A stretch of DNA of 64,000 nucleotides from Epithemia pelagica (lineage: Eukaryota; Protista; Bacillariophyta): contig OX337233.1 in NCBI GenBank assembly GCA_946965045.2, forward strand, positions 1,488,001 through 1,552,000, written 5' to 3'. Under the pieces are notes generated by a model. It saw only the letters and a program-made list of their open reading frames with translations. It had not been told where the DNA came from and did not search any database. This document shows, in pieces, positions 3,371-64,000 of the stretch. Positions within the stretch are counted from its first letter, which is position 1. The number at the start of each line of letters is the position of its first letter. The position numbers were made by a program, and so were the translations under genes.

Positions 3371-4678
3371 TCAGTCCAGTTTGATTCCAACAGGTCGACT
3401 TTGAGAAGAGTTTCGTGGACTTAGGTCCTCTTCGGCTCCACTGGAGAGAATCTTGCTGATTCCAGTAGCTTGCCCTGCCCACAAGAAACCTATCATAAAT
3501 GTTCCAAACAAGGAAGAGTACATGATCCACTCGAGTTCTGTCCACGACTGGTACTCATGATTTTCGCCACTACCCTGATCTTGGTTTCGTTGTGGTTTCT
3601 GGTACATCCACACCATGGCAAAGCCATATCGGACGGCCTGAAAAGCACAAACATATCGCATTTGCGGCATGCTGAGGAAGGAACGCACTCGCAACAACCA
3701 AACAGCATTGATCATCGAGTAGAACGCCTGGACACCAAACGCAAACATGACGCGCGGTGTGACTTCAGTTGTGGAAACATGATACATATCGTGAACATGA
3801 TGTTGCCACAGTGCCTGGCCTTGCGCAATGGCGATGAAACCATCCATAACCGCTCCATAGAAGAGAGCGTTCGCGGGGATTGACCATTTCATAAATTCAT
3901 CATCTACGTTGGGTTTTGGGGGGTTCTCTTCCTGTGAATTGATGCTACTGGTAGCAAGTGATGAAGTAGAAGAACTCTGAGCTGACCCCCGAAACATGAA
4001 AGACGCACTTGATTTCCTTCGAGAATCTTCTATTCTCTGTCTCCTGTCCTCATGCCTGGTCCTTGTCAAAAGAGTCCACAAACTTAACGACAGTGCCGCA
4101 AGATTGTAAAATACAAAACTGGAGAAAAACCGACTACTCCAAACTTCCGACGGTACTTGAAGAATTGGAATCCATGAATCGAAGGGTGGCGATGTCAACA
4201 TGTGAGGGTGAGGCTTTTGGAAGAACGTCAACAGCAGCAACGACAATAGTGTGCAGGTCAACAGAACACGGTGAAAATCCAGCATGGCATAAATCCAGTA
4301 CCGTTGAGGACGCAACCAAATCACCAAAAAGACGATCCATGCAAGTCCATATTGATGCAAAAATGACTGTCCCATATCGAAGACAGCACGAACTTCAGTG
4401 TTGTTAACGCAAAATTCACTGGATACATTCATATCATTTTGAAACACGGAGCAAGGTTGCACAGGGAATGATTCCGACGCTAGTCCAAGTCTCTCATCAA
4501 GTCGTCCAAGAGATCTAAGCGTTTTATGAAACCATTCTTGAAGAAGGATTCCAGTCGGAAGTAAGCCAAATCTGAATGGAATGCCGGTAAGTATCATGTT
4601 CAATAGACCAGCCCTGAATGGGGTCAAGAAAAAGGACTCATAAAGAGTTCTTGGTTCAGCTGGCATTGCCGTTGCCAT
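3371..4678 (-). CDS. Hypothetical multi-pass membrane protein (435 aa)
   Basis: Long ATG-initiated ORF with several hydrophobic segments and a Ser-rich loop. No family recognised. Confidence 0.65.
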   Translation of the reverse strand: MATAMPAEPRTLYESFFLTPFRAGLLNMILTGIPFRFGLLPTGILLQEWFHKTLRSLGRLDERLGLASESFPVQPCSVFQNDMNVSSEFCVNNTEVRAVFDMGQSFLHQYGLAWIVFLVIWLRPQRYWIYAMLDFHRVLLTCTLLSLLLLTFFQKPHPHMLTSPPFDSWIPILQVPSEVWSSRFFSSFVFYNLAALSLSLWTLLTRTRHEDRRQRIEDSRRKSSASFMFRGSAQSSSTSSLATSSINSQEENPPKPNVDDEFMKWSIPANALFYGAVMDGFIAIAQGQALWQHHVHDMYHVSTTEVTPRVMFAFGVQAFYSMINAVWLLRVRSFLSMPQMRYVCAFQAVRYGFAMVWMYQKPQRNQDQGSGENHEYQSWTELEWIMYSSLFGTFMIGFLWAGQATGISKILSSGAEEDLSPRNSSQSRPVGIKLD

Positions 4679-5077
4679 GGTCTTCGGTCAACAGTTTCTG
4701 AGAACTTTATTGAGCTGGGAAACGGGAATTCCAGGCGGGGCGAAATGCTCCAAAATTTCCTGGTCAATTGCAGAAACAGTACAAACTACAAACCATAGTT
4801 GCGGGAAGAGAAGGAGTAGTACAGAATGACATGCCTACTAGCAAGGACTAGAGGAGTAACAGCTCTAGAAGAGTAACACACCTTTCGTCGTACCTTACTT
4901 TCTTCTTCCCAATTCACATTGACGATTAAGTCAGACAACCCCCCTCTCAAAGACTCCACCATACCGCAATCACATAAGCCCCATACTGAGATAGCTACTT
5001 GTAGAGGAAATGATCGCGGTTGGCAAACAAACCCCCTCTCAAAGATTCCACCATACCACAATCACATACCGAGATAG

Positions 5078-8000
5078 TTAGAGGAAATGAACGCGGTTGG
5101 AATATTTCATATGGTTGATCTCTTCGCCGCTATCAGGCATTCCACCGGCAAGCTCAGCAAGTTTGTGGGCCATCTGGCACACGGCCGGTACTTTGATCGA
5201 ACCAGTCCAGTTGGGGTACGCATGGCACTGACCCCACGTAAGCTCACTGACTGGAACTGACATCAATCCCTGATCTCGTTCAATCACAACAAAACGAGCC
5301 GGCTTGGCGGTGCTGTATGGAGGCGCTCGACCGTTGATGTAAAAGGTTTGGTTTTCCAAACCTTGTAGTGCAGCAACCATTGTTCCGGCGGGTGCCGACA
5401 GGGAACCATCGTTATATCCTGGAACGCCCATTGCCAGGAACTTGTTGTCAATTCGCTTCTGGCAAGTGATGTACGCGAGATCAACCGGCTTCTTGTTGGT
5501 TCCTACTGTCTCGGAGAGGCCCTGACGAATTCCGCGAATTTCATCAGAGGCAAAACCACCAAAAGCCGAGTCCGCAATACCATCGCGCCAAACAATGCAA
5601 GAAGCCGGAGGAACTTTAAACGCTTTCATCGCGTTCGACAACGCAGATTTGTAGGCGTTTTCCAATTCAAACTCCTGTCCACCGGACTGCTTGAAGGTCT
5701 GCGAGTAGATTTGAACCCTGCTGTCCTTCGGCGTATGTTCTCGCATCATTTGAACAATTATTGCCGCACAAGACGGCTTCCTGACACGCTTTCGTTTCTC
5801 CTGATCATAGTACGGAGGCGCGTGGAACACGTCCACACCGACAAAATAGACGGGCAAAGGGACAGATCGGGGAATTGAAACCCACCTATTGAAGAAGAAA
5901 GAGTTAGAATAATGAAATGAGAAAATGATGTTTGGGGATCCAAGAACTCACCAGAGCGCAACTCCTGCTTTTTGAAGAATCTGTCGCGACACTCCTTGAA
6001 GGATCATGTCGCTTTTTCGCTCATCACGAGGTTGGTCATGACTGTAAGTTTTGAAGTTGACAAATTGGGAAAGATGCCCAGTTTTGGCAAGCAAGTGCTT
6101 GATGACGGGATACGCCGTGTCTGCCGAGCCTCGAGGTTTCACGAAATCCAGCACGAATACATTGTCTTTACCAGATCCAGAAAAGTACTTTGCAACTTCT
6201 CCAATATGCGCATCATCCCGCTTTCCGGTATTCACCAAGGCAGTAGGAGTCTCGGCAAATTGGTATTTTGCGGCAAAGTTATTCACCATTCGGCAAATCC
6301 GCTGAAAGACCGACCGAACATCGCGCGCATCAATCATATCCGAATGGAAAATAACGGCGTTCAATTTGGTTGAACTATTGGCGTTTACACGGAAGTTTGC
6401 CTTTCCAAGCACGGGTGCCCAGTTCTCAGCGTTGCGTTCGGGAACAGCCACACCTGCGGCCATCATTGCTGGAACACTCAATATTTTAGCAGCAACGGGA
6501 AGACGCTTGTTTTCAAGACGAACTCCCAGTGCAGGCAAGAGCCCACCGGCGTTCTTCGTGGTCTGCGCACCGGGAACAAGAAAGTCGCGGACCTTGTCGA
6601 TCGCACTATTACGAATCTCGGGTTTGAAACTGGCAATCATCGGGAGCTGTTCCCGTACATTCGTGTCCAATTCAGTTCCGGTGACCAATTCTGCTGGAAG
6701 AAAAATCTCGCGGTCTTGACGGCCAAGGACGGTCACCATGGGAACATGATCAGGGTATTCAAGACGAACACCTTTGTTCTTAAAGTACTGGTCATGGTTG
6801 ATTTTCTGTTCAGGCACCATTAGCGAACGAGGGCTATTCTCGAAATCCAGACCAACGATCGTGTACCCTGTTTAAAAAGGAGAAACAACAAAATGAGGGA
6901 ACAGCAGTACTTAAAAAGCATGTCCACAACACAAAACACCCATACCCTTCTTCTCACGAGTATACATGACTCGTTCACCAATCCACTGGCGCTTTGCTTG
7001 CTGCTGATTACGTTGGTTCCAATCGGTATCAGTGCTCTGGATATTGTTGAGAACATCAAGCAACGTGTTCGTACGCATAATCTTCGCACGCAAGTCGACA
7101 GTTAGAGTGAGTCTGGCAGAGGAAGTGTTTGGAGATGAGTCCGTACGACGCAACACGCCAAACTTGCACGAATAAGCTTCGTAGATATCAATTCCAAGAC
7201 TTCTTCCATCTCTGGTTTTTCCTGGAATTGCACGACTCTCGTCAATGTACTCCTCACCCCATTTACGGAGGCGTTCTCCCATAGCACGTTGAAGCGCGGT
7301 GTTGACATACGCGAGAAATGTTTCCAACAATGCGGGACCGTCCGTCTCAGCAGGGTAAACAGGCATGTCTCCCGTTTGTGCACAATGCTGAAGCATGTGC
7401 TCTTCTGACTTGAAGGTTTTCGTGGAGTTCATCGTGCGGAAGGTGTCCGCAACAACCTCCCCTGGGCCCGCTTGCGGTACTGGTGTCTTTAGACACTCAG
7501 GAGGGCCAAAATGTTGGACTTGGACAATTGTGAGTGTATCTCCCTTTGTTTCGGACCCGTCTACAAGCTGAAGCGGAAGCTTTCCTCTCTCTAGTCCGTT
7601 GATAGGCCTTCCTGAAAAGAAAAATGAGCCTGCAAAGAAAATTACTCTTTTGAAGCTCTCTTTTTGCGCATTTGACATGTCCTTCAGAAGACCGTCCCAG
7701 ACGCCCCTTCGAAAAAGCTCTGCACGGCGTCCACGTCCCTCAATGTTTTGGTCGTTCTTGTCTTTGCAATCTACAGTGTAGAGGAAGAAGCTAAAGTTGG
7801 GACCTGGGAGTCAAGCAAATCCGGAAGAATGAGAGAAATGATAAAAGAGCAAAAACACCTGTACGCCACCGCCACTTACTAACTTCAGCGGGAAGAATAT
7901 TGGTAAGAACAGATTTAATGCCTGACAAATCAGGGCCGCGTCCACGTCCACCACCACCGCGTCCACCGCCTCGCTGGTCCCGACCTCCACCTCGTTGGTC

Positions 8001-54344: not shown

Positions 54345-57300
54345 ATGGGTCTTGATGCGCAAATGGGCCTCTCATGTCGGATTGGCAATAACATGCAGCA
54401 CGGTTGGAACAATGGCATTGCAGATAGCCGCAATCAGGAAGAACCGATGATGGGAGATCAACGTGGATCGTTGGGCCTTTTCATTGAACGGAGCACGTCG
54501 GCTCCTCCTGCATCATCTTCCGGCGCAAATGCAACATCCGACCTTTCCGGAATTGTGAGTTGTTTCTTCTTACCTTCGCTCCCACTGCACTGGTGTTCAG
54601 ATACCTCTAACTCCTTTTTTGCTTCACTTGGAAAACTTCGACCTCAATGCCTATAGAAACTGTTTTCTCAGCATGACGCATCGATCACTGATCGGAACAG
54701 CCTTTTCTCGCCTCCTTCTTCTCTCGTAAGTTCACAAGCTACTACACCCGTCATCGGGAATCCTAGATTCAACGACAGTCCAGCTCTGGAAAATGAGACA
54801 TTCCGAGTGGCCATGCTTTCTTCTATGATTGACAATTCTGGAAGAGCGACAGCACCTTCAGAAACGGTGAGTTTTCTGTCCGGAAGCAATCCATCCACTG
54901 GAGGAGGGGGAGAAACGTTGGGATTGGGTTTTGGTTCACCAAGAACCGAACGAATACCTTCTTCTCTTGGCCATGAACCATTTCAAAGAAGTCATTCTGC
55001 GACACCTTCATCTCAGTCGGTTGCACCTCCCCCTGGTATGGCGGCACTTGGGGACGCATTAGATCACCATGTCGAGCACCCAACTTCACACCTGACGAAT
55101 GATGCCATAAGGAGACCTGCATCGACAGGACTTCTTGATTCGCCAGCACATGGGTCTTCTTCCACTAAAGCTCTTAGACCTTCGGCAAAAACTCTGATGG
55201 ATTGGATACAAGAAGACTTCCCACAGGATGACGTTCCTCGCTATGGCGACGAAGCAAACACTCTCCCGGGTCAGTTGGACCGTCGCTCCACTCTACCCGA
55301 TAAGCATCACCTCTATGATCACCATGCGCAACCTGCTGGTAGCCAACATTCACAGCACCTTGGTCTGACGCACGAGACTCAACCACAGCCCTTAATTGAC
55401 CAGCTTCAGCACCAAGTACAGCGCATTCGATTCGACTCAATTCCAGGAAGTGGGGGACAGGTACAGCAAATGAATCCGCCCCAAGTTGCCGGAGTTGCCG
55501 CCCAGCAACAGTCCCTTCCTCAACAAGTGATGACACAACGTTTTACGCCCACTGGGTTTGATGGAAGAGAATCTGCCAAGCCAGATCTTCCATCGATGCT
55601 TTACCAATCGGGAACTTCTCGAAATCAACATCCACAGATACCACATGGGCAGCCACAACAGCATCAACAGGTGTATGTTGCGGCGCCAGGTCGACCTCAG
55701 CAACCAGGGCATGTGGTGTCGAATCCAGAGACGGTTTATTATCAGCAGCAAATCGAGGTTGCGCCCTCAAGACTACAGGCCCAATTGCTTCCAAATGGAC
55801 AAACTGTGTACATTCAAGAACCCTCGCCTCCTTCGCAGCAACATGCTGGAGGCTACACTTATACGACGATTCAGTACCACCCCCAGTCGGGACAAATGGC
55901 ATCTGAGCAAGCGCAACAACCGACGCGAATCGTTTCGACGGCCCCAACTTCTCTGATACGCCAAAGTGACGGTTCCTATATATCAGCAGTCCCTGTTCCA
56001 TCCGGAAACACACAATCAATTTCTTATTGGCCGGCCGATATAGCGGGTCAAGGTCAAACTGTGATTGTCGGAGCACCGCCCGGTGTGGCGACTCACATGC
56101 CGCAAACAGTTACGGTGAGCCATACTCGAAGTCCCCAACAACTTGCTAATGTTGTTGAGCATAGCTTTGGCCACGGTGGTCATCAACAACGCCACTCGCA
56201 GGCTCATGGCGGAAGGAGTACACGAGACAAAGGAGGTGGCTCTCCCGTAAGCGGTGGTGGAGGTGGTGGAAACAGGTCGCGAAGGGGTGGTCATCAGTCG
56301 AGGCGCACCGAAAGCAAAGGCCATTCCACATCGAGTCCGCTTTTGGAGGAGTTTCGTACAAACAAGAATAGGCAATGGACGGTGCCCCAAATTGAAGGTA
56401 ATATCGTCGAGTTTTGCCAAGACCAGAATGGCTCTCGATTCATTCAGCAAAGGTTGGAACTTGGGGACGTCTTGGAGCAGGAAATTGTGGTTCGAGAGGT
56501 TCTCCCTTCCATTCGCAGACTTCGGAACGATGTCTTTGGCAACTACGTTGTCCAGAAGCTACTTGACTTTGGAAGCCCTCAGGTCCGAGCCAGTATAAGA
56601 GATACTCTTGAAGGTGAAATGCTCCAGCTGTCGCTTCAAATGTACGGCTGTAGAGTTGTCCAGAAAGCCCTCGAAGCTTTGGACTTCGAAGATCTCTCCA
56701 GACTTCTGTCGGAATTCCATCACAACGTACTCAGCTGCATTCACGACCAGAATGGGAATCATGTGATTCAGAAATGCATCGAAGTTATGAATACTAGAGC
56801 CAGAGCCGCAGAATCGGCCGGTGACGACGAGAAAGCCAAGCACTCTCGTGAACTTATAGATTTTATCATCTCCGATGTTTTGGTTAACGCGACAACACTC
56901 TCCTGTCACCCATTTGGATGTCGTGTTCTCCAACGCATTCTTGAGCACAGTGATAGCAATCGGAAAAACAACCTCCTTGATGAAGTGCAGAAAAGTCATA
57001 AACGTTTGCTGGACGACCAATATGGTAACTATGTCATTCAACACGTTCTTGAATACGGCAGGGTGGAAGACAGAGATTCCATCCTTGCTATCGTTGTCGA
57101 GAGCGGTCTCCTCAGCTTGTCTCGGCAAAAGTTTGCCAGCAATGTTGTGGAAAAACTCCTCAAATACGGGAATGGGCCTCAGAGAAAATCTATAGCCCGG
57201 GAAATGTTAAAGAAGGTGGACAAATCATCTGGAATGAACATGCACGGAGGCGACAGCAGTGTCGTGCTCCTCATGGTACGGGACGCCTATGCAAACTATG

Positions 57301-57522
57301 TTGTACAAACCACGCTTGATGTCGTGCCCATTTCAGAAGAAAGGACTTCCCTTCTCAACGAGTTAAACTCACATTCAGATGAACTGGTAAGGCTTCCAAC
57401 AACTAGTTTATCGTGGGATCGAAGAAATACTCACATCCTGTATTATTATTCGTTTTCAGCGGAACTACACTTTCGCGAAGCACATTGTAGCCAAATTGAC
57501 GGCTCTTGATGAAACGAAATAA
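54345..57522 (+). CDS. PUM: Pumilio/PUF RNA-binding protein, 3 exons
   Basis: Puf repeats DQNGSRFIQ, DVFGNYVVQK, MYGCRVVQK, DQNGNHVIQK, FGCRVLQR, DQYGNYVIQH, KFASNVVEK, DAYANYVVQ. N-terminal ERSTSAPP. Introns 54555-54656 and 57387-57459; the last exon gives RNYTFAKHIVAKL. Confidence 0.93.
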
Positions 57523-58210: not shown

Positions 58211-61203
58211 ATGATGTCGACTCTTCTACGGCTCTTGCCTTTGTTCTATGTGCTGTTGCTGACATGGATAAGAAAAGGCGAAGCTGAACCGATAGATGGC
58301 AGTGAAGAGAAAATTGAAAAGGATGGTGTTGTGGAGAAACAACCAAGCCAATACAGAATCACGGATTTAGCTCAATCGATCAAATCAAAATTAGAATCTC
58401 GGGAAGACCCTGAGGACGAAGAAATACGAACACAATACTGGAGAAAGACCTTCGAAGATATTAAAAAACTGTCCAATCTGATTTCAGAAAAAGAACCTCC
58501 GTTGCTAAGCAGATGGAAACAACGCCTGGATCAGGACCAAGGGTCCGTCGTTTCCGATACCAAAGTCCTCCCGAACATGACCAGTTCCGTGGATGCAGTG
58601 CAGAGCGCGGAAGAAGAATCCCTGTTGAAGGAGGGAAGTTCGAATCCGCGTGTTGTTCAAATTCCACGGTTCGAGGGTTTTCTGAACTGGGAGCGCATGT
58701 TGCAAGAATGGGCGGATGAGGTTCAAGAATATATCCAAGAAGTGGAAAGAGAATCTGGATCTGAGTACATGCTTGCAAACTATGGAAGGCCTCTTTTATA
58801 CAACAGCGAAGGATCGAAATCTAATTTCTCTATGGATTTGGACGCTGAGGACGAAGAGGACACGGACATGTTGACAGTGCAACCTTACGTCTCTGATTTC
58901 GAAGATGATGCCACCGAATTGAGTGAAAAGACAGAGACAAGAATAGGCGAAATGAGTGAAAGAGAATCTTACGTGAGTGGACAGCGAATTGTCCCTTCCC
59001 CCCTTCCAAATGGCGAATTGGCGCTGCCACACACAGATTTGTCGGATAAATCAAAGCGTATCGAAATTGTTACAACCGCCTCTCTTCCATGGAGAACTGG
59101 GACAGCGGTCAATCCACTTCTGCGAGCGGCGTATATGTTGGAAGGACGCAAGGAGATGGGAGGGAGTGTCACACTTATGCTTCCTTGGTTAGAGCGTCGG
59201 GCTGATCAAGAGCGAGTGTATGGAGTTGGCAACACATTTGAAACGAGCAAAGATCAAGAAGACTATATTCGAACCTGGCTAAGGGAATCTGCTGGCATGC
59301 CTGAAGCGAGCGAAAACCTCGGAATTCGGTGGTATACTGCATGGCAAAACAAGGCGGAGAATTCCATCTACAGTATGGGAGACATTACGGCACTGATACC
59401 TGCTGACGAAGTTGATATATGTATCTTGGAGGAGCCCGAGCATTTGGTAAGTACAAAAGAAGGATATCTGTAAAGGTGCTATGTTCACAGAATACCTCTT
59501 AAAGGCTGTCACGCTGTATCAGAACTGGTATCGAGCTCCAGGTGAGAGTTGGACGAAGAAGTTTAAGCATGTAGTTGGTATCCTCCATACAAATTACTTT
59601 CAATACGCCATGGATCAACCGGCTGCCATTATTCGTGCCCCAGCAATGCGTTTGCTGTGTTCATGGATGTGCCGAGCACACTGTCACCGTGTCATTAAAC
59701 TTTCAGGAACCATCGACAAGGTTGCACCCGAGAAAGAGCTGGTTGAAAACGTTCACGGAGTTCGTGGAACGTTTCTGGATGTTGGATCCGAAGTGAGTAA
59801 GATGCTGCGGGAATCACCGAGGAAAGCAGAGGCATCGGTCTTTGGAGCGGAAGTCGAGCCGACTATATACTTTATCGGGAAAATGTTGTGGTCGAAAGGA
59901 CTTGGTTCTTTGATGGAGCTTCTAAAATACTTTGAGGAGATATCTGGTACCAAGGTGAAAGTGGACATGTATGGAGGGGGACCAGACAAGGATGCTGCGC
60001 AAGCAAAAGCTAAAAGCCTTGATCTCGACATGCCCTTTCATGGGCCTTTGGATCATGCCGAACTGGCAGATACACACAAAATTTTTGTTAACCCGTCCAC
60101 GTCGGAGGTGCTGTGCACTACCTCTGCGGAGGCACTTGCTATGGGAAAGTTTTTGATCGGTAGGTGGTTGGAATCAGTAGCCTCCATTCCATCGTTGAAG
60201 AGCTAACCTCACCATACATCACCTTTCTTTACATGTTGGCTTGTCTCCAGTGCCTTCCCACGTCTCAAATGACTTTTTTGCTCAGTTCCCCAACTGCTTG
60301 AGCTATGCTTCTAAAGAAGAGTTTGTTGGCAATCTATTCTACGCAATGACACATTCACCGGAGCCTCTTTCGGAGGAATACTTGCATGCACTGTCGTGGA
60401 GAGCTGCTACCAAGCGACTTGAGGCGGCAGGGTGTATACCTGTTGCCGAGGCTCAAAGTATGGAGGAGTTGGGAGTAGAGATTCCACTTCCTCTTCTAAT
60501 TGAAAATGAGACGAGACGCAAACAAATTTCAACGACGCTTCATTATACAAGAAGGCGGTTCACGCAATTTCGCTCGAGGCTGTCCATGGAGATTCGTCAG
60601 AATCGGGTGCTTCCGAAGAAGCTAAAAGAGCGTTTGGCAGCAGATCTGAAAAAGAAGCTTGACCTGGAAATCGATGAGATGCTAGAGTCTCCAAAGCTAC
60701 GTCTACGACTCTCGCCGGCGGAGCTAGACAAGACACTGCTTGAGCTTTATGACAACATTAGCGCAGGTCCTAGCGGTGATGTTCTTCGAGTGATTGGAGG
60801 TGGTGGTTCCATTGGTCTACAGAACATGTACATGCGTCGCCAGGCAATGAAAAAGCTCGGCCGCGCAGGTGCACTTTCTAGTTCCGATCTATTCCCTTTT
60901 GACCTGAATGACGCGGACGTGGTGGAGCGTGACCGATCAATTAGTCAATGGATCCGATGGGCACTTCGCCGCAATCTCCCCGCAAACCGCAAGGATGGCA
61001 TTTTACCACCATCTCCGCTGGGTAAACCTTTGTCGACAAAACCAGTGAGCCAAGACAAGGCTGTTGAGACGACAAAGATGTCTCTCTCACCGTTCTCGCA
61101 CCAAACGCGGCATTCGGTCATGTCGTCGTGGTCAGGGCTCGCTGCGCCTCGCCAAAGCTTCAGGTACCAATCACAAAGAACAACAAGTACCCTTCTCATA
61201 TAA
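58211..61203 (+). CDS. DGD: Digalactosyldiacylglycerol synthase (GT4), 3 exons
   Basis: VTTASLPWRTGTAVNPLLRAAY, LEEPEHL-NWY, VVGILHTNY, FVNPSTSEVLCTTSAEALAMGK. Introns 59447-59522 and 60160-60250 join in frame. Confidence 0.92.
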
Positions 61204-61752
61204 CCCACTTTATCATGTCGTTTTGATGATTTACACCATCCGGTTTGTTGAGCGTTTCGTTCTCGACCCATCGGTAGCTGGCCTTTTCCCATGGCACCAA
61301 GTCATGTCCCATCATGAAAACGTTTTCGATCGCTTGTCCTCTTTTACTGCAATCTCTCGTCATCGTCCTAGTTAGACAAATACTCTACTATTAGAACTAC
61401 CTCTACAGAATGTTTCAAAAATCTTAGCGTTCGATTTGTGTCTACTTTGATTCCCAGAAGTCATTAAGAAATTCTGTGGAAGGTCGCAGAAGGTTGCGTG
61501 GCCTCTCCTCTACTAAAGAGGTCGAGCAGAGAGGCCTCTAACTTCTAACTAACTCCATACCAGACTGTGTAGGTAGTTCGTCTCACATTTTTATACTACA
61601 GTAGGAATTTTTTGTACGACCGGGAAGTAGTTTCGTGCGAGTCGCGCGGTTTCCCTCTCGTGTGTGACACTTGTGTGACACTTGTGTGACACTTTGTGAC
61701 ATGGCTTCCATGAATTTCTCACTACCTACACAGCTTGATAGGGAGTAAGTTT

Positions 61753-61930
61753 ACTACTTCCCTGTGTCTGGCCGTCCTCTCGCGTCGGGCGCGCCCGGCT
61801 TGTCGGGAGAATGACTCGACGGGCAATTGTCTTGTCGGGCGTGCGCCCTCCTCGACCATTGCCCTCCTCGTCATTCTACCCTCCGCGCCGGGCGGTCCCT
61901 CCTTGAAAGGACTCGACACCGGGAAGTATT
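61753..61930 (-). ncRNA. Candidate structured RNA or ssDNA element: rod-like hairpin with four iterated 5x5 loops, copy 1
   Basis: Continuous nested pairing from TACTTCCC/GGGAAGTA in to a GGGC-GCAC-GCCC cap. No known RNA family recognised and transcription is unproven. Confidence 0.4.
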
Positions 61931-62127
61931 AATACTAACTCCATACCAGACTGTGAAGGTAGTTCGTCTCACATTTTTATACTACAGTAGGAATTTTTTG
62001 TACGACCGGGAAGTAGTTTCGTGCGAGTCGCGCGGTTTCCCTCTCGTGTGTGACACTTGTGTGACACTTTGTGACATGGCTTCGAGGAATTTCTCACTAC
62101 CTACACAGCTTGATAGGGAGTAAGTTT

Positions 62128-62305
62128 ACTACTTCCCTGTGTCTGGCCGTCCTCTCGCGTCGGGCGCGCCCGGCTTGTCGGGAGAATGACTCGACGGGCA
62201 ATTGTCTTGTCGGGCGTGCGCCCTCCTCGACCATTGCCCTCCTCGTCATTCTACCCTCCGCGCCGGGCAGTCCCTCCTTGAAAGGACTCGACACCGGGAA
62301 GTATT
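62128..62305 (-). ncRNA. Candidate structured element, copy 2
   Basis: Same as copy 1 except one C>T on the minus strand (62259), which turns a C-G pair into U-G. Confidence 0.4.
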
Positions 62306-62946
62306 AATACTACCTCTACAATTCTCGAAAATATAGGGGGATCTTACAGAAGAGGAGGGGAAAAAAGGAGGAGAAAAAAAGAAGAAGAAAAGGAAAAAAG
62401 AAAAAGAAGGAAGAAATTATGGTAAGATTCCCTTCGTCGAGAACGTGCGATTGCCGCTATCAGAATGTGATCTAATTGGCTGTTGTCTTTGTCACTGTTT
62501 CTTCCCCTGTGTGCAATGTGTGGTGAGTACGTGGTGGACCACGAAGTAGAGAGGAGGGGATTTGGCAGGTCCCCACGGTCAACGTACGAGTGTTTCTACG
62601 GTAAGTGCTGAGAGCAGCTGTCTTTTGCCTATGTAAAACAACGTCAGCCTCACATATGCCTTGTGACATTTGTTCGTATTGCCGGTGTGTGTCTTTTAGC
62701 CATACTTAAAACGCCGTATACTGCGCGAAGATTTGCAAATGGCTAGCTACTCCACGGCACGCAAATTTGCAGATCTTCTCATTATTTTATCAACGATGGC
62801 TTTCTCACTACTGTTGTTGTGTTCTTGCCAATACTGTTTTCTTTCGTTCTTCTGTTTCTGGTAACAGCACCATGGTAAGTGCTCAAGCACTGCTGGTGCC
62901 CGAATCATGTTGCTTTTTTCATTTCACTAACTATTTTTATTTTTTC

Positions 62947-64000
62947 TCAATACAGACGATTGCTCGCATGGTTTCGGCATGATTTGTCATGCGGTGGGAT
63001 GCCCCTTCGATTGGGGCGATTCCAGTACTGAATGTTGCGGATGCAACAGTTGTTGGTTGGAAGTTGCGGGGGGAATTGTGGTGGTGGTTGATTTGGCAGC
63101 AGTATTTGTTGATGGGCCGGATTGGGCACGGCCGTTGTTTGCTGGCAGAGGATCGTGGACAAGAAAGCTGCCTGCTGCAGCAATTGCTGCTGGTAGTGAT
63201 AGACCTTGGTCTGGTTGTGTTGCATGGATGGCACCGCTTGGTGCTGGATCATTTGTTGTTGTGTTGGAGGCATGGTAATGTTTGTTGTTGTTGTTGTTGC
63301 ATTTGGATTCTTTGCAGGCTGGAAATGGGCGGCCACTGGAGATGATTCAGCTTGCATACTGTTTGTCTCACCCTCCTCATCTGCCATATTGATATCTTCG
63401 CTGTCACTCTCCTTTTCTTTTTCTTTTTCTTTTTCTTTTTCTTCATTCATGTCTTGCTCTTCATCTGATTCATCTTCCTCGTCATGCTGTCCGTTGTTGT
63501 TGTCATCGTTGTTGTCTTCATGATCGTGTCCCATCTCTTCGATTGCAAGTTGTGTTTTAGTGTGGAGATAACTGGAACAGCCATTGCAGGGACAGTGGTC
63601 ATTGTGGAAGAATTGGAGCGGCCATTGTTGCTGGATCTCTGTTTGGATTGAGAGATATTCCGAGAAGAAGCGTTCACCGTTGTCGTCCGGTAAGTCCTCC
63701 ACGTAGTCGAACGGTTTCTTTGCCCCGCAGCGAACGGCAAGCTTGTTGATGAATGCCAACTCGCAGTGATTCCAGTGACTCACAACTCCTTCCCATGCTG
63801 CAGGCATTTTCTTGTTGCGTTGTTGCGAATTGAGATTGGCTAAACGGACGTTTTGTCGTATTTTCTTGTTGTATCGTGCTGTTCCACAGAGATTCAGCAC
63901 ATCGCTGAGTGCCTCGTTCATACCTCCATTCCCACAATGGGCAAGGTCGTCGTGCCATGATTCAAGCTTACTTTCACCACGGTAAGACACAAACTCACTC
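62947..64000 (-). mobile_element. C-terminal part of a probable Mutator/ISL3-like transposase; ORF enters from the right edge
   Basis: Frame is open to 64000. YRGESKLESWHDDLAH...RYN resembles the catalytic-Glu helix (xxNxxESxH/N) of MULE-type transposases, followed by an acidic and Gln-rich tail. Confidence 0.5.

Follow-up and report, generated by a model that had tools for sequence, protein, structure and literature searches.

A rod-like hairpin in the diatom Epithemia pelagica is part of an abundant miniature element, very probably a Crypton-type transposon, whose joined ends form a long imperfect palindrome

The rod-like hairpin studied here, which lies in a 64,000-nt stretch of Epithemia pelagica DNA (referred to as the window), was found to be part of a 386-bp dispersed repeat, and the window carried a head-to-tail dimer of this repeat at 61548–62312. 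The repeat is very probably a non-autonomous transposon of the Crypton type, which would be mobilised in trans by the tyrosine recombinase of related 4.4-kb elements. Elements of this class are known; what sets the present clade of Cryptons apart is the long rod that spans the joint between the two ends. Throughout, the element is read on the minus strand of the window, which corresponds to the sense strand of the partner's gene.

A sequence-only reading of this DNA had described a rod of about 178 nt with four 5 × 5 internal loops, present twice at 61753–62305 and belonging to no recognised RNA family, and had proposed folding of both strands, a search for covariation among homologues and an examination of linkage to a neighbouring reading frame. 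The minus strand of 61753–61930 (178 nt) was predicted to fold as a single rod with four 5 × 5 purine loops and a GCAC cap, with an RNA minimum free energy (MFE) of -112.1 kcal/mol (z = -11.2) that was equalled by 0 of 200 dinucleotide-preserving shuffles, versus -96.6 kcal/mol (z = -7.9) for the plus strand. Loop parsing on the minus strand gave AAGGA/GACGC, GCGGA/GACAA, GAGGA/GUCGA, and GAGGA/GACAA, the same loops as had been listed, and all four were closed by C-G on the outer side and GGG/CCC on the inner side. Pairwise alignment of the units placed the second copy at 62128–62305 with a sole difference, G at 61894 versus A at 62269, which on the minus strand changes a C-G into a U-G pair. 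Thus the rod, its loops with their closure, the second copy, and the single change between copies were as described; the statement that the hairpin is present twice was right as to the number, but the two hairpins sit in the units of one tandem dimer and are therefore not two independent occurrences. A search with the covariance models of Rfam 15 at E values up to 10 gave no usable match to any known RNA family, again in agreement with the earlier reading, the only row for the hairpin being a chance match to MIR1144 (E = 4.8; 17 bits versus a gathering score of 90); nor was a self-cleaving ribozyme of the retrozyme type found in this search even at E up to 10.

A first look through the assembly from which the window was taken (60.5 Mb, 23 contigs) gave 172 candidate places for the 386-bp unit. 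From 40 scored candidates, 56 matches were obtained, 45 of which spanned the full unit at 92% to 100% identity, and BLAST comparison of 30 fetched loci showed that similarity broke off at the same two points, give or take a few bases, and that the flanks were unrelated. In the dimer, unit 1 was 386 bp and unit 2 was 375 bp in length, the latter lacking one 11-nt repeat unit and differing by four substitutions, one in the hairpin and three outside it. The features assigned in the window are as follows.

61548–62312, minus strand: head-to-tail dimer, 765 bp with the 4-bp cores at its two outer ends (direct repeats D1 and D2, BLAST comparison with 30 further copies, end mapping)
61548–61933, minus strand: unit 1, 386 bp counted with one core (96–100% identical to copies elsewhere in the genome over positions 1–386)
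61934–62308, minus strand: unit 2, 375 bp (pairwise alignment of the two units)
61548–61551, minus strand: core at the outer right end of unit 1, ACTA as written in the window and TAGT in the sense of the element (edge survey of 29 arrays)
61934–61937, minus strand: single shared core at the joint of unit 2 and unit 1 (tandem junctions, with one ACTA only)
62309–62312, minus strand: core at the outer left end of unit 2 (end mapping)
61753–61930, minus strand: rod hairpin of unit 1 (folds, loop parsing, covariation)
62128–62305, minus strand: second rod hairpin, in unit 2 (a single difference from that of unit 1, 62269 A versus 61894 G)
61721–61751, minus strand: inner extension of the descending arm, which pairs with the other end once the ends are joined (inverted repeats I1 and I2, joint fold, compensatory changes in six families)
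62096–62126, minus strand: inner extension, counterpart in unit 2 (evidence as for the unit 1 segment)
61933–61963, minus strand: right-end arm of unit 2, which lies across the shared core from unit 1 and makes the palindrome of that unit complete (inverted repeats, joint fold, compensatory changes)
61547–61577, minus strand: right-end arm, counterpart in unit 1 (evidence as for the unit 2 arm)
61587–61595, minus strand: conserved TATAAAAAT as read on the sense strand, located immediately beyond the palindrome's outer edge and directed at the joint (present in 6 of 7 right ends compared, variant in the seventh)
61973–61981, minus strand: TATAAAAAT, unit 2 copy (same evidence)
61662–61694, no strand assigned: three tandem 11-nt units (GTGTGACACTT) in the miniature-specific part (sequence, unit alignment)
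About 62047–62069, no strand assigned: two 11-nt units of the GTGTGACACTT repeat in unit 2 (unit alignment)

As to function, the conserved TATAAAAAT may serve as a promoter at the junction or as an A/T-rich element for unwinding. The 140 nt to the left of the dimer (61408–61547) had no other occurrence in the genome and were for this reason rejected as a part of the element. A 12-nt string, ACTACCTCTACA, consisting of the core plus 8 nt, was observed at 61396–61407 and again at 62309–62320, bracketing these 140 unique nt together with the dimer; this duplication could be a host repeat, a flank carried along, or a trace of longer homology at integration. A reading of the unit as an introner was also rejected, on inspection only, because an inserted copy spliced out at GT...AG would take one extra base with it. 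Upstream of the element, a long ORF on the plus strand (54807–57509) with seven Pumilio (PUF) repeats represented an ordinary host gene. At 60900–61311, where the upstream gene ends, a contig of run X4 gave coverage of high depth and was followed by adapter letters at 61311, and another X4 contig carried a copy of the element from a different locus; run X4 may be a transcriptome. On the other side, purine-rich low-complexity runs (GAA/GGA) and their complement at 62360–62412 and 63410–63448, about 1 kb apart, flanked the 3′ part of an ORF near the right edge of the window (62947–63990).

In the survey of 29 arrays, TAGT was present on both sides of 24, the other five differing at one edge, mostly by one base; counted by edge, it was observed at the left in 24 and at the right in 25 of the 29, with variants mainly at the outermost base. 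The target consensus reconstructed from the 29 arrays was RG-TAGT-A, the non-palindromic core had one orientation relative to the element in 29/29, and tandem units had one core in common. Fixed orientation of a non-palindromic flanking 4-mer is what would be predicted from core pairing in site-specific recombination, whereas the target duplication made by a cut-and-paste transposase would not be expected to have a fixed orientation. Neither terminal inverted repeats nor long terminal repeats were found in the element, no obvious inverted recombinase-binding sites were located beside the core, and ends of the Helitron type (5′-TC and CTRR-3′) were absent. At the hairpin-side end of two loci (L003 and L019), TGGC replaced TAGT and was followed by about 8 further identical flank bases (ATCGTAA...) before the sequences diverged; this variant end may mark a subfamily with another core or a carried flank.

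Arrays were observed at 8 of the 29 best-scoring loci. Some arrays were mixed, L027 having an older subfamily (subfamily 2) beside the young one (subfamily 1) and L068 a miniature unit followed directly by a 4.4-kb element. Mixed arrays of this kind cannot have come from copying of one unit; they fit the insertion of a circle at the TAGT beside a copy already in place, and the dimer in the window would have arisen in the same way. Miniature units were also seen beside 4.4-kb elements or about 60 nt from them (L066:7873–7973, L068:2970–3349), members of the family thus being apt to insert at one another's ends. At one locus (L030; G000:C8:3331582–3334966), about 15 nt were near-repeated on both sides, GCACATGCTTCCGCA before the left core and GCTCGTGCTTCCGCA after the right core, unlike the other insertions.

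When the older subfamily (L027:1887–2277) was used as the query, places matching the hairpin half only and one place matching the other end only were obtained. A walk from there led to two adjacent reading frames on the minus strand (L063), the homologues of which were all from one public assembly, and whole 4.4-kb elements were retrieved from public assembly ERZ21939226 by exact-protein look-ups. The partner element of L065 occupied 3383–7808 (4,426 bp); its left end matched positions 1–217 of the miniature at 80% and its right end positions 307–389 at 82%, while the miniature matched L066 at 80% and L067 at 82% at both ends. Elements of the L065 type began with TAGT and ended with TAG plus one variable base. 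The miniature has thus kept about 217 bp of the end proximal to the recombinase gene and about 83 bp of the opposite end, and since both ends are common to the miniature and the 4.4-kb elements, the 386-bp unit is an internal-deletion derivative. A Pfam search with ten ORFs of L065:3383–7808 at E values up to 0.1 gave no match, and precomputed Pfam annotation of the called genes of the partner element held none; by this search, no reverse transcriptase, RNase H, methyltransferase, HUH, or helicase domain was present among the partner-element ORFs, and the element is therefore taken to lack a reverse transcriptase.

The partner protein itself gave nothing in Pfam or in a direct sequence search of the PDB. 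A full HMMER search collected 162 relatives, and an alignment of 47 sequences was used as a profile; the only PDB matches of this profile were tyrosine recombinases, namely XerA (E = 0.04) and Tn1549 Int. Within the close family, RTGRRT, RH, and Y were invariant, the XerA counterparts being HVLRHT, GH, and the nucleophile Y; thus, in the catalytic signature, the first His is replaced by Arg, and the box I Arg and the Lys had no confident placement. A structure prediction from eight sequences was unusable (pLDDT 40); the AlphaFold model based on the 47-sequence alignment had a pLDDT of 88. The first 28 rows of a wide structure search with it consisted only of tyrosine recombinases, type IB topoisomerases, Ndc10, QRICH1, and integrase-like phage regulators, led by Cre (Z = 6.8) and XerA (Z = 6.4), scores that are moderate and all below 8, and the top match in Foldseek was QRICH1, a Crypton-derived domain. 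Furthermore, PF00589 gave sub-threshold matches in two relatives, the language-model features of the protein fell with PF00589 and DUF3504 clusters, and its nearest language-model cluster was mostly from diatoms. Since these scores, each moderate, are concordant, the partner protein is very probably a tyrosine recombinase.

The PF00589 and DUF3504 models found no match in the whole genome; the NDC10_II model detected about a dozen other Crypton-like recombinase loci (L031–L062, e.g., G000:C16:2733720–2734670 and C5:1152420–1153304), and none of the three models reached the partner recombinase. The 10-kb surroundings of the NDC10_II loci (5 kb on each side) had no sequence, motif clusters, or long hairpins in common with the element, and these recombinases were rejected as partners on account of surroundings devoid of the rod, its motifs, or any similarity. 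Profile comparison between the partner recombinase and the NDC10_II-type recombinases of the same genome was not significant. Judged from these comparisons, the rod-linked recombinases are a clade distinct from the NDC10_II-type Crypton recombinases of this genome. A tyrosine recombinase, absence of a reverse transcriptase, absence of terminal repeats, and 4-bp repeats matching the target together correspond to the published definition of a Crypton.

Eight rods from one genome were aligned, comprising two miniature subfamilies, a variant, and five 4.4-kb elements. Across them, 95.4% of the cells were paired, versus 36% to 49% when the partners were slid by 1 to 3 columns, and 12 pairs had changed on both sides, versus at most 5 when slid; the 12 pairs, and likewise the 26 cells changed on both sides, were reached in none of 500 shuffles. 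Loop columns were invariant or almost so and were among the most conserved of the alignment. These findings, which agree with the earlier description of varying stems and conserved loops, indicate that the rod is under selection. Each loop module, 5′-C GAGGA G-3′ over 3′-G AGCAG C-5′, can be read as two tandem G.A/A.G steps around one G-C pair. At two further loci (L071 and L072), whose recombinases are about 42% identical, rods with unrelated stems were located upstream of the gene, and their loops had GAGGA opposite GACGA or a doubled 8 × 8 version of it. A metagenome scan with an invariant 23-mer gave no match, and a scan with the loop pattern gave more than 120, nearly all GC-rich noise. 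Two environmental contigs (L177:300–475, plus strand; L134:51–216, minus strand), both short and neither with a recombinase, had rods with GACGAGGA-type purine loops and different stems.

Pairing was not confined to the rod of one unit. The natural joint in the window (261 nt) folded into one rod of about 243 nt, with DNA-parameter energies of -66.1 (z = -8.7) for the minus strand and -61.1 for the plus strand. When the right end was joined to the left end by script for six families, the last 36 nt of the right end paired with a segment located about 190 nt inward from the left end, and compensatory changes on both sides were observed in 11 of the 36 right-arm columns, even though the compensating outer arms are more than 4 kb apart in integrated 4.4-kb elements. 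The first T of the core was opposite a T in 6/6 families, while its A, G, and T were paired. Joined ends, as in a circle or a tandem array, therefore form an imperfect palindrome of about 245–260 nt with TAGT inside one arm, and this palindrome is complete only with the ends joined.

As to the strand, G.U appeared in 12 stem columns of the eight rods on the sense strand, G.A in 6, A.C in 4, and pyrimidine-pyrimidine pairs in 2, and all rod loops were purine-rich on the sense (minus) strand. The excess of G.U and G.A together with the purine-rich loops indicates that one strand is favoured, and the preference for the minus strand suggested earlier from the sequence was thus upheld, by the better fold as well. 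A strand bias of this kind is equally expected for RNA and does not separate RNA from single-stranded DNA; sheared G.A pairs in tandem, when set between a pyrimidine and a purine (pyrimidine-GA-purine), are stable in either molecule. In 7/7 recombinase loci (L065–L067, L069–L072), the rod was located 5′ of the gene with its purine-loop strand as the coding strand; the miniatures, although devoid of a gene, retained the complete rod plus the arm from the opposite end.

We consider the chances about even that the rod is a cis-acting recombination site working in folded DNA form. The folded form would be either a hairpin of the purine-loop strand or a cruciform, and folding would bring both ends and the core together for the recombinase, the descending arm acting like the internal complementary region of DIRS elements. 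Folding of the purine strand would also set the TAGT core in a defined, mismatched context, and the sheared G.A pairs would stabilise the hairpin of one strand only, the pyrimidine strand folding poorly, thereby providing a choice of strand. Strand-biased copying-out would, in addition, fit the gain in copy number of active Cryptons (PMC9977147). A more specific version, namely that a eukaryotic clade of Cryptons recombines through a folded single DNA strand in which the G.A-zippered rod splints the ends and presents TAGT with a T.T mismatch, is put forward tentatively and is possible but doubtful. If true, eukaryotes would possess an equivalent of the recombination seen with integron attC or CTX phage, the DIRS complementary region might have a structural forerunner here, and the minimal cis requirement would be defined by the 386-bp miniature.

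Two alternatives keep the same transposon and differ in the form in which the rod acts. It is unlikely, although not far-fetched, that the rod works at the RNA level. In this case, TATAAAAAT would be a right-end promoter that fires across the joint only in circles or tandem arrays, giving a leader with the rod upstream of the recombinase gene, and the G.A loops would serve to bind a protein or to control translation, stability, or silencing. The constant position and strand of the rod in all seven recombinase loci, the better RNA fold of the minus strand, the predominance of G.U over A.C columns, and the conservation of TATAAAAAT just outside the palindrome, pointing inward across the joint, would all suit a leader; however, the retention of the rod and the other-end arm in gene-less miniatures is the pattern of a mobility site and would be needless in the leader of a missing gene, a start site 25–30 nt beyond the TATA motif would leave some of the outer arm on its upstream side, none of the sequencing runs containing the stretch was on record as RNA, and Rfam had no match. 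Rather improbable is the proposal that the DNA remains unfolded, with one arm serving as an array of GAGGAGGG and the other as an array of CTYGTCGGG duplex binding sites, spaced at 16–18 bp, which would build a recombination complex like arm-type sites and leave the palindrome as a by-product. Such arrays would account for the regular 16–18 bp repetition of motifs on both arms and for the loop motifs being the most conserved columns, but the spacers between duplex sites would have no need to covary as they do in keeping the arms complementary, and covariation extends to outer arms separated by more than 4 kb in integrated elements. Moreover, two unrelated types of motif would be required, versus one module in the folded model, and homogenisation of the arms by gene conversion would remove the conserved mismatched loops.

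The remaining alternatives dispense with the recombinase or with the transposon. Rolling-circle movement by a Helitron- or Replitron-like HUH protein, or retrotransposition of a circular RNA as in retrozymes, with the likeness to the recombinase-encoding elements being incidental, is very improbable: head-to-tail tandems and short terminal direct repeats occur in rolling-circle elements too (PMC10288648) and rod-like folds are typical of retrozymes, but both ends are common to elements whose only recognisable protein has the tyrosine-recombinase fold, no HUH, helicase, or reverse-transcriptase domain was detected in the partner ORFs, no ribozyme matched at E up to 10, Helitron ends are lacking, mixed-subfamily arrays are impossible by rolling-circle copying of one unit, and Replitrons were not found in diatoms (PMC10288648). 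Least credible of all is an independent gene for a structured non-coding RNA with a functional tie to the right-edge ORF, which the sequence-only reading had called transposase-like. Its strong fold, its conserved loops, and the shared sense of the rod and the ORF at 62947–63990 are in keeping with such a gene; against it, the 386-bp unit is a dispersed repeat with 172 candidate places, its flanks were unrelated in the 29 arrays examined, and the ORF had no significant Pfam match, to a transposase or otherwise, and no relation to the partners of the element. With unrelated flanks around the dispersed copies, the hairpin has no particular relation to this ORF, and the proposed linkage was abandoned.

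The direct repeats of 4–6 bp at Crypton termini are considered to serve as substrates of recombination, and non-autonomous Cryptons have been described (PMC3212892); in Chlamydomonas, an active Crypton has CACCG ends and a CAYCG target, and a gain in copy number has been reported for active Cryptons (PMC9977147). Like the Cryptons described previously (Goodwin et al. 2003; Kojima and Jurka 2011, PMC3212892), the present family combines a tyrosine-recombinase gene with the absence of a reverse transcriptase, has no terminal inverted or long direct repeats, carries 4-bp target-matching repeats at both ends, and includes miniatures with the two ends only that far outnumber the full-length elements. 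It differs in that its ends form a conserved joint palindrome of about 250 nt with regular G.A-type loops and in that its recombinase is too divergent for the PF00589, DUF3504, and NDC10_II models. Cryptons have been stated to lack conserved structural features (PMC12130899), and no mention of hairpins or palindromes was found in the searchable Crypton literature.

The nearest parallel to the pairing of the ends is with DIRS elements, the internal complementary region of which is complementary to both extremities and essential for completing the circle junction (PMC7192593). Here the descending arm pairs with the right end (36 nt), with the core, and with the left end, so that an internal segment complementary to both extremities would likewise bring the termini together at the circle junction; in both, a short junction sequence flanks insertions and insertion into resident copies is frequent. 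Unlike DIRS, the present element has no reverse transcriptase, RNase H, methyltransferase, or inverted terminal repeats of the DIRS type, and a long rod beside the end supplies, with its descending arm, the complementary segment. Folded sites are known from bacteria as well. The attachment site of CTX phage is a folded single-strand recombination site of a bacterial tyrosine recombinase. Integron attC is another site that a bacterial tyrosine recombinase uses as a folded strand, with a choice of strand (PMC2727003). Both kinds of site resemble the rod in being imperfect palindromes in which unpaired features rather than sequence are conserved, in favouring one strand, and in having a tyrosine recombinase as partner, whereas the present rod has a eukaryotic host, is four to five times longer than attC, is known from sequence and predicted folds, and possesses iterated symmetric purine loops in place of the extrahelical bases of attC. 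Strand-biased circularising integrative elements of Vibrio are tyrosine-recombinase elements that, in the accessible part of their description, copy a circle from one strand without excision (PMC9345347); copying-out of one strand in this manner would fit a gain in copy number, although these elements are bacterial and multi-gene, and that part of the description reports no long rod.

What is new from this locus is an abundant 386-bp miniature that is nearly all joint palindrome, together with its partners and the mixed tandem arrays in which they occur. The movement of Cryptons has largely been inferred, and the described lack of structured ends has made their annotation hard. With the rod-bearing clade, Crypton mobilisation can be tested on a compact cis element of about 300 bp, and other genomes can be searched for such elements by the structural signature of the rod. 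It may also represent a link between Cryptons, the complementary region of DIRS elements, and the folded-strand sites of bacterial recombinases.
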